Assembly (NCBI GenBank): GCA_904063045.1
Contig: CAJFCJ010000020.1
Coordinates: 488,916 to 552,915, forward strand
DNA: 64,000 nt
Source of the DNA: Dimorphilus gyrociliatus
Taxonomy: Eukaryota; Animalia; Annelida
Direction of reading: 5' to 3'
Shown here: piece after piece, positions 12,014 through 18,070 of the stretch
Layout of the letters: the number at the start of each line of letters is the position of its first letter
Position numbering within the stretch: position 1 is the first letter of the stretch
Made by a program: the position numbers and the translations under genes
Notes under the pieces: model-generated
Seen by the model: only the letters and a program-made list of their open reading frames with translations
What the model was told of the DNA's origin: nothing
Database searches by the model: none

Positions 12014-15000
12014 CGTCCTCTGCAGCGCGGTTGGTGGCGGCGGCGGCGTTAGTGGTGGCGGTGGTAAAGGAGTTAGTTGGACAGCTTCGGGCTGTGTTGT
12101 GTGTGTGTGAATTTCGGCATTTTTCTGCACGCAAAATACTATATATAGGACTGGGTGCGTAATTATCTTGAAAGTACATTCGTCAATTTATTCCCATCGC
12201 GTGTCATCTGCTGGTTCCGATGACGCCGACGTCATGGTGTTGGCGGTTTTTCAGACTTGCGTCTTGTTTACGTAATTCAAAATCATTTGAATAGATGTGG
12301 TAAACGATTGCAGCAGTAATATCGAACTAGCTAAAGAAAAAACATGTGCTACGTTTGTAATTATAGTTGGAGCGCTAAAAGCGCCAGGAGGCGCTATTTG
12401 ACCTTTAGCGTTAGGCGTCTATAGGCCTGTATCAGTGAAGTGGACGTAATTGAAAAATGACGTCCGAAAATGGCCGCTTGATGACTATCTATAACGACTT
12501 TCCCCCCGATCGGTCATTATGCAAATAAAGCACCGCCTTTTCAATACACAAAGAGCCGTTTCTATGGTATGATGCAGATGGTCAGGGGCGAATCTAACGA
12601 TGTTAATTAGGTTCAAATGACGGCCGACAATGAGTCGCTATTCCGAGTCTTTGTTCGCAGTCTACTTTTATATACCCCGGGGGAACTTGGGGCGTTTGGT
12701 GGCGCCTCTGAGATAGCGGCCGACCGGAAACGATTGAAAACGAATCCAAGAAAGATAAGGGTACACAAAAAAAAGCGAGGGCATCTCGCACCGATCGTTC
12801 TACTCGACGCCGTTCAAGTGTTCTCGTGCCGCTTTTATAAGCACCACTTTGATGCTACAGCTGCGGCCGATCCTCTGCAGCGCCGACAGCGGCGGCGGTA
12901 TTTCGATGATGTATAGGGCTTCTCCATCCAGCCGTGTTCGAGCGGCCGTTAACAATGTACTCTTAGAGCGGAGAATTAAAATCGAGGCCGCCGCCCTTTT
13001 CGCGCTGCAGAGGACGTTGACGATACTAGAGACGTCTGTCGGCTCATTATGGAGCACACTAATCGGCAGTACACAGCTATCGGGCTTCTCTCTTTCATGC
13101 TCAGTCAGGCGTATAGTTCATGCCAGAATAACCCCGCAGGAACTATATAGCGGCGTTTGTTGACGTAATCGATTTGAACGCTCGAGTCATTCTGGCCCGA
13201 AACCATTCTCTGCGATAAGCGCCTCTGCCGCTAAACGTTTGCCAGCTCAGTGATTGCATTAGAAAGTATTTGGTTTGGAAAGGAACGATCAATGAGTGAA
13301 GCCCGTAAAAGCTTTGCCTAGTCATTTGAACACGGTCCGACGCCATGTTGTTAGGGTCACGTGACCAACGTTTCCCGCCACCCAAAGAGCGAATCAGCGA
13401 CCAATTGATAGGCGATTTGCATATGAATAATTCGCGTTAGACTGGACACTTTGGAAGCGTTCCCGGCGGGGTGTGTAAACGCATCTAGATGCATACCGAC
13501 TAAGGGTGAAATTCCCCGCGGTGCGCTAGTTACGGTAGACGTTTAGACAAGTTGTCGATTCGCTAGAAAGTTGTTTTCTTTTTTTTTTTCGTCTTCTTTA
13601 TTATCCAACTACAATCTCATAATAAGGTCGCAAAGGAATATAAAGTAAAGACGTGTTGTCGCCGCATTTTCCATCCCTTTATTTGAAGATGAAAGGCGAC
13701 GAGCGCCATTATCGACTATTCTAGCGGACATGTGCTTCTAATTGCCTGATTGCTTACACCAGTGTTCTATCGGTCCGCATTAGCACCTCGCTTCCGCTTC
13801 TGCTTGTTTCCATGGAAACGAAATCAAATCGAGACCGCCAAGATCGATGCGGCTAAATTGGATTGTGACATTTTGTATCTATAGCAGGTGCCTCCTTACA
13901 ACTTATTCCCCATTGTTCTATTTGCTCTCAATGCAAACAAATGAGTGCGATCGGGCACTGTAAACACAATACGAACAATGTAAATAATCTAGATCATGCT
14001 TTGTTTGTCCGATGCTTCTTTGCGTTTCTCCGATAACGAGTTTTGCATAATTTACGGCAAGCGCTGAGAAATTATCGACGCGTAAAACGTCTTTATTCCT
14101 TAATACCAGGCAGCGCGACAGTATAAAGTGCAATGGCGTTCGGATTAGCGAAATCAGATTAGAACGGGAAAGAAAAGCGGATAATCGAAGCTAATCCGAC
14201 ACTATCTGCTGATTAGTAGCAATCATCGCTAGAATACCGTATGAAGGCAAAAAGAAAAGGTGCCTTCCTTGAATATGTATATTTGGCGGACTGGAACGTA
14301 TCAACAGACCGTGACAAACTACTAGTGATAGATCTATCTAGAAGTGTTGTGTATGTTCAGTTTGCATAGCTGTCAACCAACGCGCTCTTGTTTGCTCTTA
14401 TTTCTCGCCGCTTATTACACTCTATCTCAAACAACTGTTGCGGAGACGCGACCCATCACCAGATGGCGCTGAATCTCCGACTGCAAAATTTTTTTACGTG
14501 TGTAATACGCTTTATTTATTACTCATTTTTATTATAACGTAACATGTGCTACCGATATCGAATAGCTAGCCACAGAGTCATAGGCCTAAATAAGTTAAAC
14601 GGAAAAATACAAATGGTCGCCATTTAATCAGTGTTTTTACACCTTATCAATAACTACTATCTAATCTTTCGGCGCAATGTGTTTCGAATTTCATTTGCAA
14701 ATGTTATAATCGAAAAAACCGTATTTATCAGCCTATTCGAGTATATATTTAAGTAGAAAGACAATGCAAGACTTGGCAAGTATTAAAACTGATAATCTGC
14801 TATTTCATTCTCGACCCCTTTTTTTTAACAGAAAAGCTCCTTATCAAAGCAAACATCCGTTTATTTTCGTTAAGGTACCATTTATTTATGCTAGAAGCTA
14901 TGAAGTGTTAATTAAACATTTGCACAAGAATTTATAGGGAAAGTTCAATGATTAATTATACGCCTATAAAAATGCCGCTCTTCTTATCGAGTAGTTTCAA

Positions 15001-18000
15001 TTTAAAAAAAAAATGTGACTTAATGAAGGCGTGCAAGCTGCTAATTAAAGGACAACATGCGGACGCGTGTACGAACTCATTAAATACACTGTCAGCAGAC
15101 AGGTGATCGCAGGTGTACGACACGAACCAGTCGCCGATGTCAGACGAGCAATCTTTTGACACAATTGTCAAGTGAACTGTTTCATTCTATCACGCTTTAT
15201 TGAAGCTTCATTAATTACTCGTTGTGCCGTTGTTTGCCGCGCTTTAACTCGGAGAAGAAGACTCTCTCTCTACCTCCTTCTCTTTTATGCTGACAAGTTA
15301 TTGTTTGGATATCAAACTTTCAATTTGTTGTTTCCGTTTGAAGGAAAAAAATTATATAACCAAACTACTGAGTATTTGTATTTGCATATAGAGAAATGTA
15401 TTTTTCTTAAATTGGATATTATATGTGTAAACATTTATATGTATATAAATATATATGTATATTGAATATTTATATGTCTATATTTAACAGTAAACTTTAG
15501 CTTAATAAAAAACATATACTATGTTTACTTATAAATGCATATTTACAAATATATCTAGATATATTTAAAGAATAAAAGAGTACGCAGATATATATATTTG
15601 CATGTCCTGCACTCTTTTACTGAGATGATGCAATTTTCTTGCTGCTGTCGTGTTGATATTTAGCGGGAAAATTGACAGAGCGTCAGAAAAATGGAAAGTC
15701 TACAAATTGTATTTAGCGACGCGGATTTGTTCTATCAGCTTTCGCGGTGTTGGTGAACAGTCAAGTAGCTGCAGCAATCTGCATCGAGGATGTGACAAAA
15801 ATTGCGTCATTAGCGCGACCTAATTGCGCGGAAGTGACGTCATTTGTGACGCAATTAAATGTATATAGACGCGCGCATGCGTGTTGTGTGTAATCACTCG
15901 CCTTAAGGAAACCAATAGTGGGACAGGATATGTATGAAAAAGATATAAATAAACTATAAAGCTTTAAGAGTTTTATACTATTCTTTAGTGAACGAAAAAG
16001 TCTGTTACTGATTAGAAAGTGTTACCTTTTGTGCGCGTGTAGTATGTGAACTTTGAGATGTAACATGACACACACGCTCAGTAAGGTGGCTTCGGGCATT
16101 TGCAAAGCTTCAACACACGCTCGTGCATGTTTACCAAGGCCGAATCGTATTGCGCAGCCGCTAACGCCAGAAACGCAGCGGCGTAGTATAAAAAAAACAC
16201 AACAACGACTCTAAACAGAACAATCAGCATGAAAAAAGTCGTAAACTAGGCTTACATCGACGGTTAACGAATGTAGGCGGAGCCAGACTTGTTGATGGAC
16301 ATCCGATTATACGCGCGCCCGAAGCTTATTGGTTAACAAGGTGAGCGCTTTGCGCATGACTAATAATGTTGTGTTGTACGGCCGATAGAGGCAATCATTT
16401 GGTATAGGTACGGCGGATTGAGAGTGTTTATAGAAGGAGCGATATTAGATATACGGCTATATTTATCCACTGGCTATTTGGTTCACTCAGCTGTCCACCA
16501 TGTATCCGAATAGGCCCCCCGTAAGTGAACACAATTCTTCGGATTATCGAAAGGAGAAATTACGGATTGACTGCTTACAGGGCCCTCATCAACCTGGACA
16601 ACCGTTTAAATTTACTGTAGCGGAATCATGCGATAGAATTAAGGAGGAATTCAGCTTTCTACAGGCGCAATATCACAGGTAAAGCGTTTACTGGCGGATA
16701 CTGAGACGAATCTAATGCATACGATGAGCTATAAATGTTTATATGCACACATATATATATGTGTGTAATACATATAGCTCTTTGTTTTTATGGCGGTCTG
16801 CAAGCTGTACTTTTTCCTATTCTCTTTTTAACCACCGCCACAGTGTACTCTCAACGTTTTTATTCTTTATTCGTGCGTGCTTTTATAGCGTTTTTCCTTG
16901 TCAAAAATCATCTTTTTTCTATCTAACTCTTCGCCTTCTTTTCATCCTTGCTCATTCACTTTACTCTTCCTTTGTAGTGTTTTTAAGTCGTCCCTTGTCG
17001 ATCAGGTAATACCTGACAACATTTTGTGTATTTATACTGCATGAGTCAGCTAAAACTACTCTAGAGGGTAGTCAGTTGGCGAAAAAGGAGCTTTTTTTTG
17101 TACCGTCCTCTGCAGCGCGCGGTGGTGGCGGCCACAATATGGCGCCTAATTCGAATTTGCCAAGACTTGGATTGTTTTAAAGGTGTTCTAGCAAAGGAAT
17201 ATACCAGTCGCGTGATAACAATAGTGAAGACGGACCGATTTTAGTGAGTTTCTTAGTGTATTAGAGGAAAAAGGTACCGCCGCCGGTAACGGCGCTGCAG
17301 AGGAGAAATCGATGACAAAGAGGCACCTATTTCTCATTGACGCTAGGTGCTTTCGAAAACGAGGGTGGTGTCGGCATAGAAGTGGCCCTCACTACCACTC
17401 TCTTGTCAAACACGTTCCTTTGTAGTGGTTTCCATAGTAACGAGTTACTTACCGCGTATCTCTTTGGCGACAGCCTGAAGATGGAATGCGAAAAACTGGC
17501 ACAGGAGAAGACAGAAATGCAAAGACATTATGTTATGGTTAGTACATTCTATGCATTAATGCGTGTGTACATTACAAGATTGTTAAGTATATATGCAATA
17601 TGTATATATACGCGTGCTTTATACACGCGCCGTCGGCAGCTCAATAACACAAGAATCTATGAATAAGTAATGTTGGCTGTTGCACGCCGCAAAGCCTTGA
17701 TTGATCAAATGTATTGCTTTTCGAAGCAGTTCATATTCTGACTATAGGCTCATTTTAAACGATTAATTTAGTAATCGAAAATAGTAGACATCATTCACCT
17801 TTCCACTTAAAATTATTTACTCCCACATATTAAATATTTTTAGATTTCTATTATGATAATATGTTACTAATTACTTCATTTTATGTTTCTTTATCAATAT
17901 AGTATTACGAAATGTCGTACGGGCTGAATGTGGAAATGCACAAACAGGTAAATAAAATATATTTTGTAAATACTCGAATCGCCAGATGGCGACGTAGCGC

Positions 18001-18070
18001 TCAAAAAAAGGAAAAAAACACGCCCCCTAGCATCTCCGTCCTCGGCAGCGGAGTTGGTGGCGGCGGCGGC
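12014..18070. repeat. Dispersed ~30-bp GC-rich element, 6 copies (consensus CGTCCTCTGCAGCGC-N2-5-GG(T/C)GGCGGC)
   Basis: Copies at 12014(+), 12871(+), 12987-13016(-), 17104(+), 17275-17304(-) and 18037(+). Confidence 0.9.
15829..15916 (+). promoter_or_regulatory. Candidate proximal groucho promoter (ETS-CRE composite, NRF1-like, CCAAT)
   Basis: CGGAAGTGACGTCA at 15829-15842, GCGCATGCG at 15873-15881 and CCAAT at 15912, about 600 bp upstream of the acceptor at 16490 and the CCACCATG start. Confidence 0.5.

Follow-up and report, generated by a model that had tools for sequence, protein, structure and literature searches.

Competing RNA structures of the docking/selector type are found at clusters of mutually exclusive exons, such as Dscam exon 6 and 14-3-3 xi. 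Reverse-complementary repeats in introns are said to drive exon circularisation or skipping, with pairing within one intron competing against pairing across introns, as Zhang et al. reportedly described in Cell in 2014. A different kind of locus-specific sequence is found at CHD4, where two clusters of ZNF410 motifs are unmatched in the rest of the human genome (10.1101/2020.08.31.274324); our comparison with the ZNF410-CHD4 system also draws on 10.1101/2020.08.31.272856 and 10.1101/2024.02.24.581901. Here, we describe six copies of a two-part element of ~28–30 bp at the groucho (gro) gene of the annelid Dimorphilus gyrociliatus. The stretch analysed, hereafter the window, is the 64 kb at 488,916–552,915 of contig CAJFCJ010000020.1 (genome, 77.9 Mb in 349 contigs), and positions are those of the window unless a contig is named.

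The gro locus resembles the ZNF410-CHD4 system in four respects: two clusters lie a few kb apart at one gene, the motif copies are long and near-identical, no comparable cluster exists elsewhere in the genome, and the target encodes a chromatin co-repressor component. It differs in that the gro motif is unrelated, is two-part with a GGC-repeat box and is present in three copies per cluster. The gro binder is also putative, and conservation is known only within a lineage diverged by ~4%, as described later.

Each copy is composed of a core of 13–16 bp, a spacer of 7 ± 1 unrelated letters, and the GGC-repeat box (the GC box) (Table 1). The 13-mer core TCCTCTGCAGCGC, often preceded by CG and followed by G, is exact at 12016(+), 12871(+), 13002(−), 17106(+), and 17292(−), and has two mismatches at 18039(+). 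This count of five exact copies and one with two mismatches in the window compares with 0.28 expected, and none of 100 shuffles reaches six. The core is also the sole non-simple 12-mer with five occurrences in the 64 kb. The longer 16-mer CGTCCTCTGCAGCGCG is exact at 12014(+), 17104(+), and 13001(−), with 0.01 expected from shuffles. The GGCGGC(GG) box, which was not used in finding the copies, lies 6–8 letters 3′ of the core in all six of them. The copies are also present in RNA and DNA contigs obtained independently from other samples, so the element is not an assembly artefact.

The copies fall into two types. In type I, the core is preceded by CG and followed by G (copies 1(+), 3(−), and 4(+), and the degenerate copy 6(+)), whereas in type II the core is followed by CCG and the GC box by GGTA (copies 2(+) and 5(−)). 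The pair of copies 4 and 5 (I+, II−) is the inverted image of the pair of copies 2 and 3 (II+, I−) by type and orientation, and a solitary type I copy lies 750–855 bp outside each inverted pair. Together they form two homotypic clusters of three copies each, ~4 kb apart, which bracket the gro 5′ end. The element is used independently of orientation, with +,+,− in the first trio and +,−,+ in the second (four + and two − in total). The first-pass annotation of this DNA had already reported the six copies in two trios with these orientations, the three exact 16-mers, the match of 31/34 between 12014–12047 and 18037–18070, and that of 27/30 between 12871–12900 and the reverse complement of 17275–17304; all of these were reproduced, the 16-mers by a search of the window. 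Its statement that the flanks are unrelated is borne out by flank alignments, in which no homology was found beyond the element and scores above chance arose only from the partner copy of each inverted pair. It had placed the element in gro introns, which is demonstrated for copies 4–6 only (introns 2 and 4).

Copies 1–3 lie 3.5–4.5 kb upstream of the exon with the initiation codon (ATG at 16500, from the sequence and RNA contigs) and ~3.1–4.1 kb upstream of the main gro RNA 5′ end, where the contig of the strongly expressed 5′ exon begins (16139). They are upstream of every well-supported RNA 5′ end, and the local contig depth is only ~6×. The only RNA near them is the weak transcript at 13474–15280, which they closely precede, and contigs of low depth. 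They are within the most G+C-rich 2 kb of the window (47%).

Table 1. Positions of the element copies, neighbouring motifs, and gro features in the window
Feature	Position	Strand	Description
Copy 1 (type I)	12014–12047	+	16-mer CGTCCTCTGCAGCGCG, 7-nt spacer, (GGC)4 box
Copy 2 (type II)	12869–12900	+	Core 12871–12883, spacer CGACAGC, GGCGGCGG then TA
Copy 3 (type I, reversed)	12986–13016	−	16-mer 13001–13016, 6–7-nt spacer, GC box 12986–12995
Copy 4 (type I)	17104–17131	+	Intron 2; 16-mer, 8-nt spacer, GGCGGCC; runs into CTCF-like motif 17132–17145
Copy 5 (type II, reversed)	17275–17304	−	Intron 2; core 17292–17304; matches copy 2 at 27/30
Copy 6 (degenerate type I)	18037–18070	+	Intron 4, 89 nt past exon 4 donor; two core mismatches; 31/34 match to copy 1
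CTCF-like sites	5747, 11999, 12201, 14456, 17132, 21531, 22498, 25269, 55831		Scan of the window; first eight in or around gro
CTCF-like motif abutting copy 1	11999–12012	−	12/14 match
CTCF-like motif abutting copy 4	17132–17145	+	12/14 match
TCACGTGA box	13357–13364		340 bp past copy 3
TCACGTGA boxes	18103, 18632, 18666, 18732		Intron 4, next to copy 6
gro exon 1	16139–16520	+	5′ untranslated region (UTR) beginning at or before 16139, seven codons, donor past 16520; RNA contig, GT..AG joint 16520/16581
gro exon 2	16581–16678	+	Start of Q domain; joints in two RNA runs, TLE_N homologues
gro intron 2	16679–17473	+	795 nt, unusually long; holds copies 4 and 5
gro exon 3	17474–17537	+	64 nt; RNA joints 16678/17474 and 17537/17903
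gro exon 4	17903–17947	+	45 nt; RNA joint 17537/17903, sequence
gro intron 4	17948–19122	+	Holds copy 6
gro exon 5	19123–19261	+	Read from sequence
Weak spliced upstream RNA	13474–15280	+	Runs X13 and X2; mini-introns 13570–13626 (GT-AG) and 14776–14831 (apparently GC-AG)

The distribution of the element in the whole genome should be noted. The two-part pattern CTGCAGCGC N5-9 GGCGGC matches only five sites in the 77.9 Mb, all at gro, and none in the control. The full 21-position pattern with up to three mismatches likewise finds the gro copies only. Of 12 exact occurrences of the 13-mer in the genome, five are at gro and seven are on contigs C29 and C272. These seven share long identical flanks, are not accompanied by the GC box, and lie inside a 215-aa open reading frame (ORF) that belongs to an unrelated multicopy unit; a single repeated coding sequence accounts for them by coincidence. 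The element is private to the gro locus within this genome, and the claim of the first-pass annotation that no copies exist outside gro holds for the window and for the entire genome. Since the element is private, a high-copy miniature inverted-repeat transposable element (MITE) or short interspersed nuclear element (SINE) family, which that annotation had weighed, is excluded, and the expected genome-wide set of targets fails likewise.

A more general motif with degenerate sites was also considered and rejected, as the bare 13-mer with up to two mismatches occurs at background level (425 matches, compared with 333 in the control) and no looser match has a GC box. A scan of Joint Genome Institute metagenomes with the two-part pattern gave single chance matches only, in apparently unrelated contigs. 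Comparison with known RNA families gave only sub-threshold matches, to a TA-rich stretch. The multicopy unit itself is found at C29:561191–595080 and C272:5844–7684 in at least seven copies, partly ~1.83 kb apart; its 215-aa ORF is Ser/Thr-rich, and the 13-mer falls within a codon run reading GAAEDED.

Comparison among the five exact copies suggests constraint on the cores. When the copies are compared in pairs, 49 of 70 spacer positions and 61 of 80 positions in the upstream flanks differ, whereas no core position does. Counted as departures from the majority, the numbers are 0 of 65 core positions and 16 of 35 spacer positions. Copies 2 and 5 have three differences, all of them in the spacer (p = 0.009). 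Identical cores with random-looking spacers argue for constraint: old neutral duplicates would not have five perfect cores in common and recent ones would share spacers, a reasoning that holds in outline.

A further comparison, covering copies 1–3, is given by a lineage ~4% diverged from the reference, which is present in the coral-aquarium metagenomes and metatranscriptomes X6–X12 and is represented here by contigs of the metagenome runs X6 and X9. Over 3,346 nt it shows 115 substitutions and 14 indels relative to the reference, the variants being identical in X6 and X9. The cores of the three copies are unchanged (p about 0.07–0.17). Copy 1 has no listed difference, whereas the 30 nt that precede it carry four. 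The only change in copy 2 is 12899 T>C, just past the GC box. The 16-mer of copy 3 is intact amid 13 variants in 91 nt (p = 0.066). Another relative, ~10% diverged, is found in SRR23372228 and SRR23372229 (Logan), as well as in SRR31984834, and is collinear with the window at 20322–26537, the 3′ half of gro; its contigs end near position 19995. Both lineages are good comparators for non-coding elements of the D. gyrociliatus genome.

Some smaller features of the copies and their surroundings were also observed. The spacer of copy 3, at 12997–13005, is a perfect E2F-type site (TTTTCGCGC) in the reference and is destroyed in the ~4% diverged lineage. At 18673–18698, a seventh GC box followed by GGTAAATCG is 81% identical over 26 nt to the 3′ part of copy 2, with no core before it, and may be a copy that has decayed or a match by chance. 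No relatives are on record for the 136-aa ORF that overlies copy 6, and neither nine ORFs around the copies nor two ORFs at exon 6a had a match in the collections searched.

The two clusters co-occur with other motifs. CTCF-like motifs (CCASYAGRKGGCRS, up to two mismatches) number nine in the window, compared with 1.46 expected, and two of them directly abut copies 1 and 4 (chance about 0.001). TCACGTGA boxes number five, compared with 0.40 expected, and are all beside the clusters; several have the longer form GTCACGTGAC. Judging by the CTCF-like motifs and TCACGTGA boxes present in both, the clusters resemble regulatory modules. The words TAGATGGCGATA and TAGATGGCGTCT occur three times each in the window. 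In the published study of D. gyrociliatus, which provides ATAC-seq (assay for transposase-accessible chromatin with sequencing) and CAGE (cap analysis of gene expression) data, the CTCF motif is the commonest in open chromatin, and unusually long introns hold open regions (PMC7854359).

The element core itself was tried as a CTCF site and rejected, as the CCASYAGRKGGCRS scan matches the neighbours and not the core; the best match within the element is 10–11/14 by our own alignment. The element resembles CTCF sites in being long, G+C-rich, and of the kind read by multi-finger proteins, and in that two copies abut CTCF-like motifs. It differs in that the core is off the CTCF consensus, and in that CTCF-like motifs are widespread, whereas the element is found only at gro.

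The element is genuine and statistically robust, and it occurs at no other locus of the genome; its function, namely that a protein binds it, that the action is on DNA and not RNA, and in which direction it acts, we infer solely from its anatomy and context. Our leading reading, which we put forward tentatively, is that the copies are private homotypic clusters of candidate sites for a sequence-specific DNA-binding factor controlling gro. The sites would be dedicated to gro because no comparable sites exist elsewhere in the genome. Each copy would be a two-part site in double-stranded DNA read by one sequence-specific protein, for which a multi-zinc-finger factor is the most plausible candidate. 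With three sites upstream of its promoters and three more inside introns 2 and 4, gro would gather the factor, which would determine gro transcription, whether by acting directly or by connecting the two regulatory modules. Regulation would thus pass through an element private to gro, a site existing nowhere else in the genome.

This reading is supported by the use of both orientations, as expected of sites in duplex DNA, by the position of copies 1–3 outside the well-supported gro transcript and in the G+C-richest part of the window, and by the CTCF-like motifs and TCACGTGA boxes common to both clusters. It also draws support from the uniqueness of the element in the genome, from the contrast of identical cores with variable spacers, from the unchanged cores of copies 1–3 in the ~4% diverged lineage, and from ZNF410 at CHD4 as the closest precedent. 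A bipartite multi-finger site had been proposed in the first-pass annotation. The proposal fits the anatomy, with two fixed blocks, an arbitrary spacer of fixed length, and both orientations, but the support foreseen for it, a genome-wide family of sites near developmental regulators, does not exist.

Several observations weigh against dedicated factor sites. The element is not known to match any factor motif, CTCF giving the alignment mentioned above. The identity of 13/13 in five copies is tighter than in most factor sites. Partner copies share additional letters (17 nt in copies 1 and 3, 16 nt in copies 3 and 4, and 15 + 10 nt in copies 2 and 5), which RNA pairing or an origin by inverted duplication would likewise give. 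The contrast between core and spacer is partly built in, since it was by the core that the copies were detected. Copy 3 has an eroded GC box in the ~4% diverged lineage, where its spacer and both immediate flanks are changed too. The conservation evidence, at ~4% divergence only, is suggestive and not significant alone. The motif was also not found around gro exon 2 in eight other, distant animals, whose exon-2-anchored contigs share only exons with the window.

The alternatives partly depend on the gene structure. gro is on the + strand, and exons 1–4 are confirmed by spliced RNA contigs, the exons having been searched singly. A 60-nt mini-intron separates exons 1 and 2, exons 3 and 4 are constitutively joined in the RNA contigs, and an alternative exon pair lies beyond exon 5, at 19.7–20.7 kb. 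Contig depths are a crude measure, and rare RNA forms drop out of contigs. The upstream RNA at 13474–15280, in which no convincing coding ORF was noticed, represents a non-coding transcript or else a distal gro 5′ UTR. A joint of low depth with CT..AC ends (15901–16024), within 15563–16025 on the − strand, suggests that an antisense transcript is spliced there and diverges from the gro promoter. RNA run X13 additionally contains the gro mRNA of a second animal.

The strongest alternative, which we nevertheless regard as unlikely, is that copies 4–6 form an RNA switch, in which copy 5 pairs either with copy 4 in intron 2 or with copy 6 in intron 4. Pairing with copy 6 would loop out exons 3 and 4, whose combined length the first-pass annotation had correctly given as 109 nt (64 + 45 nt), and would favour their frameshifting skipping or their circularisation; alternatively, a hairpin would tune the removal of the long intron 2. 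The positions suit such a switch, as copies 4–6 are intronic and flank exons 3 and 4 in the required orientations, copy 4 competing from inside intron 2, where copy 5 also lies. Predicted duplex energies are −48 to −61 kcal/mol, compared with about −25 kcal/mol for shuffles, and copies 5(−) and 6(+) are reverse-complementary across introns 2 and 4 with a predicted −48.4 kcal/mol. Two helices with an internal loop would account for the two-block pattern too. In run X2, the unspliced contig of intron 2 has a depth of ~500, compared with ~82 for intron 3 and ~1300–1560 for the spliced joints (crude contig depths), and this may reflect regulated retention. In run X13, the depth is zero in the intron 2 bins at 16805–17404.

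Against the switch, copies 1–3 are upstream of the main RNA 5′ end in a region of low contig depth. Neither the skipping joint between exons 2 and 5 nor the back-joint from exon 4 to exon 3 is among the joints listed for the contigs of four runs, to 18004. In the predicted fold of intron 2, the pairing probability of the copy 4 and copy 5 cores is ~0, and the local hairpin between 17104 and 17275 suggested by the first-pass annotation is missing from the minimum-energy structure, being 7 kcal/mol worse if enforced. Self-hairpins of single copies are no more stable than those of shuffles. Copy 6, the key partner, carries two core mismatches. Pairing requires complementarity, not an identical sequence at every copy, and in the ~4% diverged lineage the change in the GC box of copy 3 has no listed matching change in copies 1 or 2. 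The competing pre-mRNA duplexes that had been proposed are thus physically possible for copies 4–6 (−48 kcal/mol predicted) but have found no positive support.

Comparison with the two RNA systems gives a similarly divided picture. The gro copies resemble docking/selector sequences in being locus-private, complementary, and intronic, with one partner able to choose among several. They differ in that exons 3 and 4 are single and constitutive with no selector before each exon, and in that the copies are identical rather than graded and half of them lie outside the demonstrated transcript. The docking/selector type in its strict sense does not apply, since exons 3 and 4 do not form a cluster of alternatives. 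As for circularisation by intronic inverted repeats, copies 5(−) and 6(+) flank exons 3 and 4 in the same manner, with copy 4 as the competitor in one intron. The gro matches, however, extend over ~30 nt only, with mismatches in copy 6; the upstream trio is left unexplained, and no back-splice or skipping junction is among the joints listed for the four runs.

Somewhat less probable still is that the copies are a relic of an old local inverted duplication, in which a two-site module (II+, I−) was copied in reverse and its interiors decayed, with little or no present function. The exact mirroring of the pair of copies 2 and 3 by the pair of copies 4 and 5 is what such a duplication would leave. 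Copies 1 and 6 share 39/45 letters, and two of the six differences fall within the core, as expected of neutral decay; erosion is under way in copy 6 and in the GC box of copy 3. On the other hand, a duplication old enough to randomise interiors, spacers, and flanks would not leave five identical 13-mers. No residual similarity is seen in alignments between the interiors of the two pairs (~100 and ~170 nt), in which only the elements themselves align, and the orientation of copy 6 is wrong for a simple inverted duplication.

We find it improbable that the role of the clusters is architectural, that is, that they are pairing or boundary sites holding the gro promoters in a small chromatin loop, where orientation would matter (e.g., the convergent copies 2 and 5). 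Such a role is distinct from that of classical activator or repressor sites. The clusters do flank both 5′ ends (13.4–16.2 kb) in a roughly symmetric manner, each with a single copy, a gap of 750–855 bp, and an inverted pair, and they are closely associated with CTCF-like motifs. Known architectural proteins, however, have many genomic sites, whereas the element has none elsewhere, and the published data suggest that CTCF motifs in D. gyrociliatus act mostly near promoters, not at domain boundaries (PMC7854359).

A transposon origin, with MITE-like remnants whose terminal inverted repeats lie at 12871/13014 and 17106/17304, is practically excluded by the genome-wide scans and the absence of target-site duplications: the two short units (144 and 199 bp) are bounded by inverted copies as in MITEs, but the element is not dispersed, the flanks of neither unit share a direct repeat, the interiors are unrelated, and there are extra solitary copies.

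Groucho/TLE is a co-repressor common to the Notch, Wnt, Hairy, and Runx pathways, and to our knowledge little is known about how its dosage is set. A motif exclusive to gro, in two clusters around its promoters, is a precise handle on gro control, and the compact genome of D. gyrociliatus together with the published ATAC-seq and CAGE data makes it cheap to examine. If the copies act as RNA, the locus would be a compact case of competing intronic helices gating a frameshifting exon pair. A bolder extension of the dedicated-site reading, which we consider doubtful, is that gro is under a private address, the putative factor having the six-site, two-cluster array as its sole genomic target. If true, this would be a second, independently evolved case of one factor for one gene after ZNF410-CHD4, once more with a chromatin co-repressor gene as the target, and no such case would precede it outside vertebrates. 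A factor dedicated to gro would mean that single-target regulators are not a vertebrate oddity.

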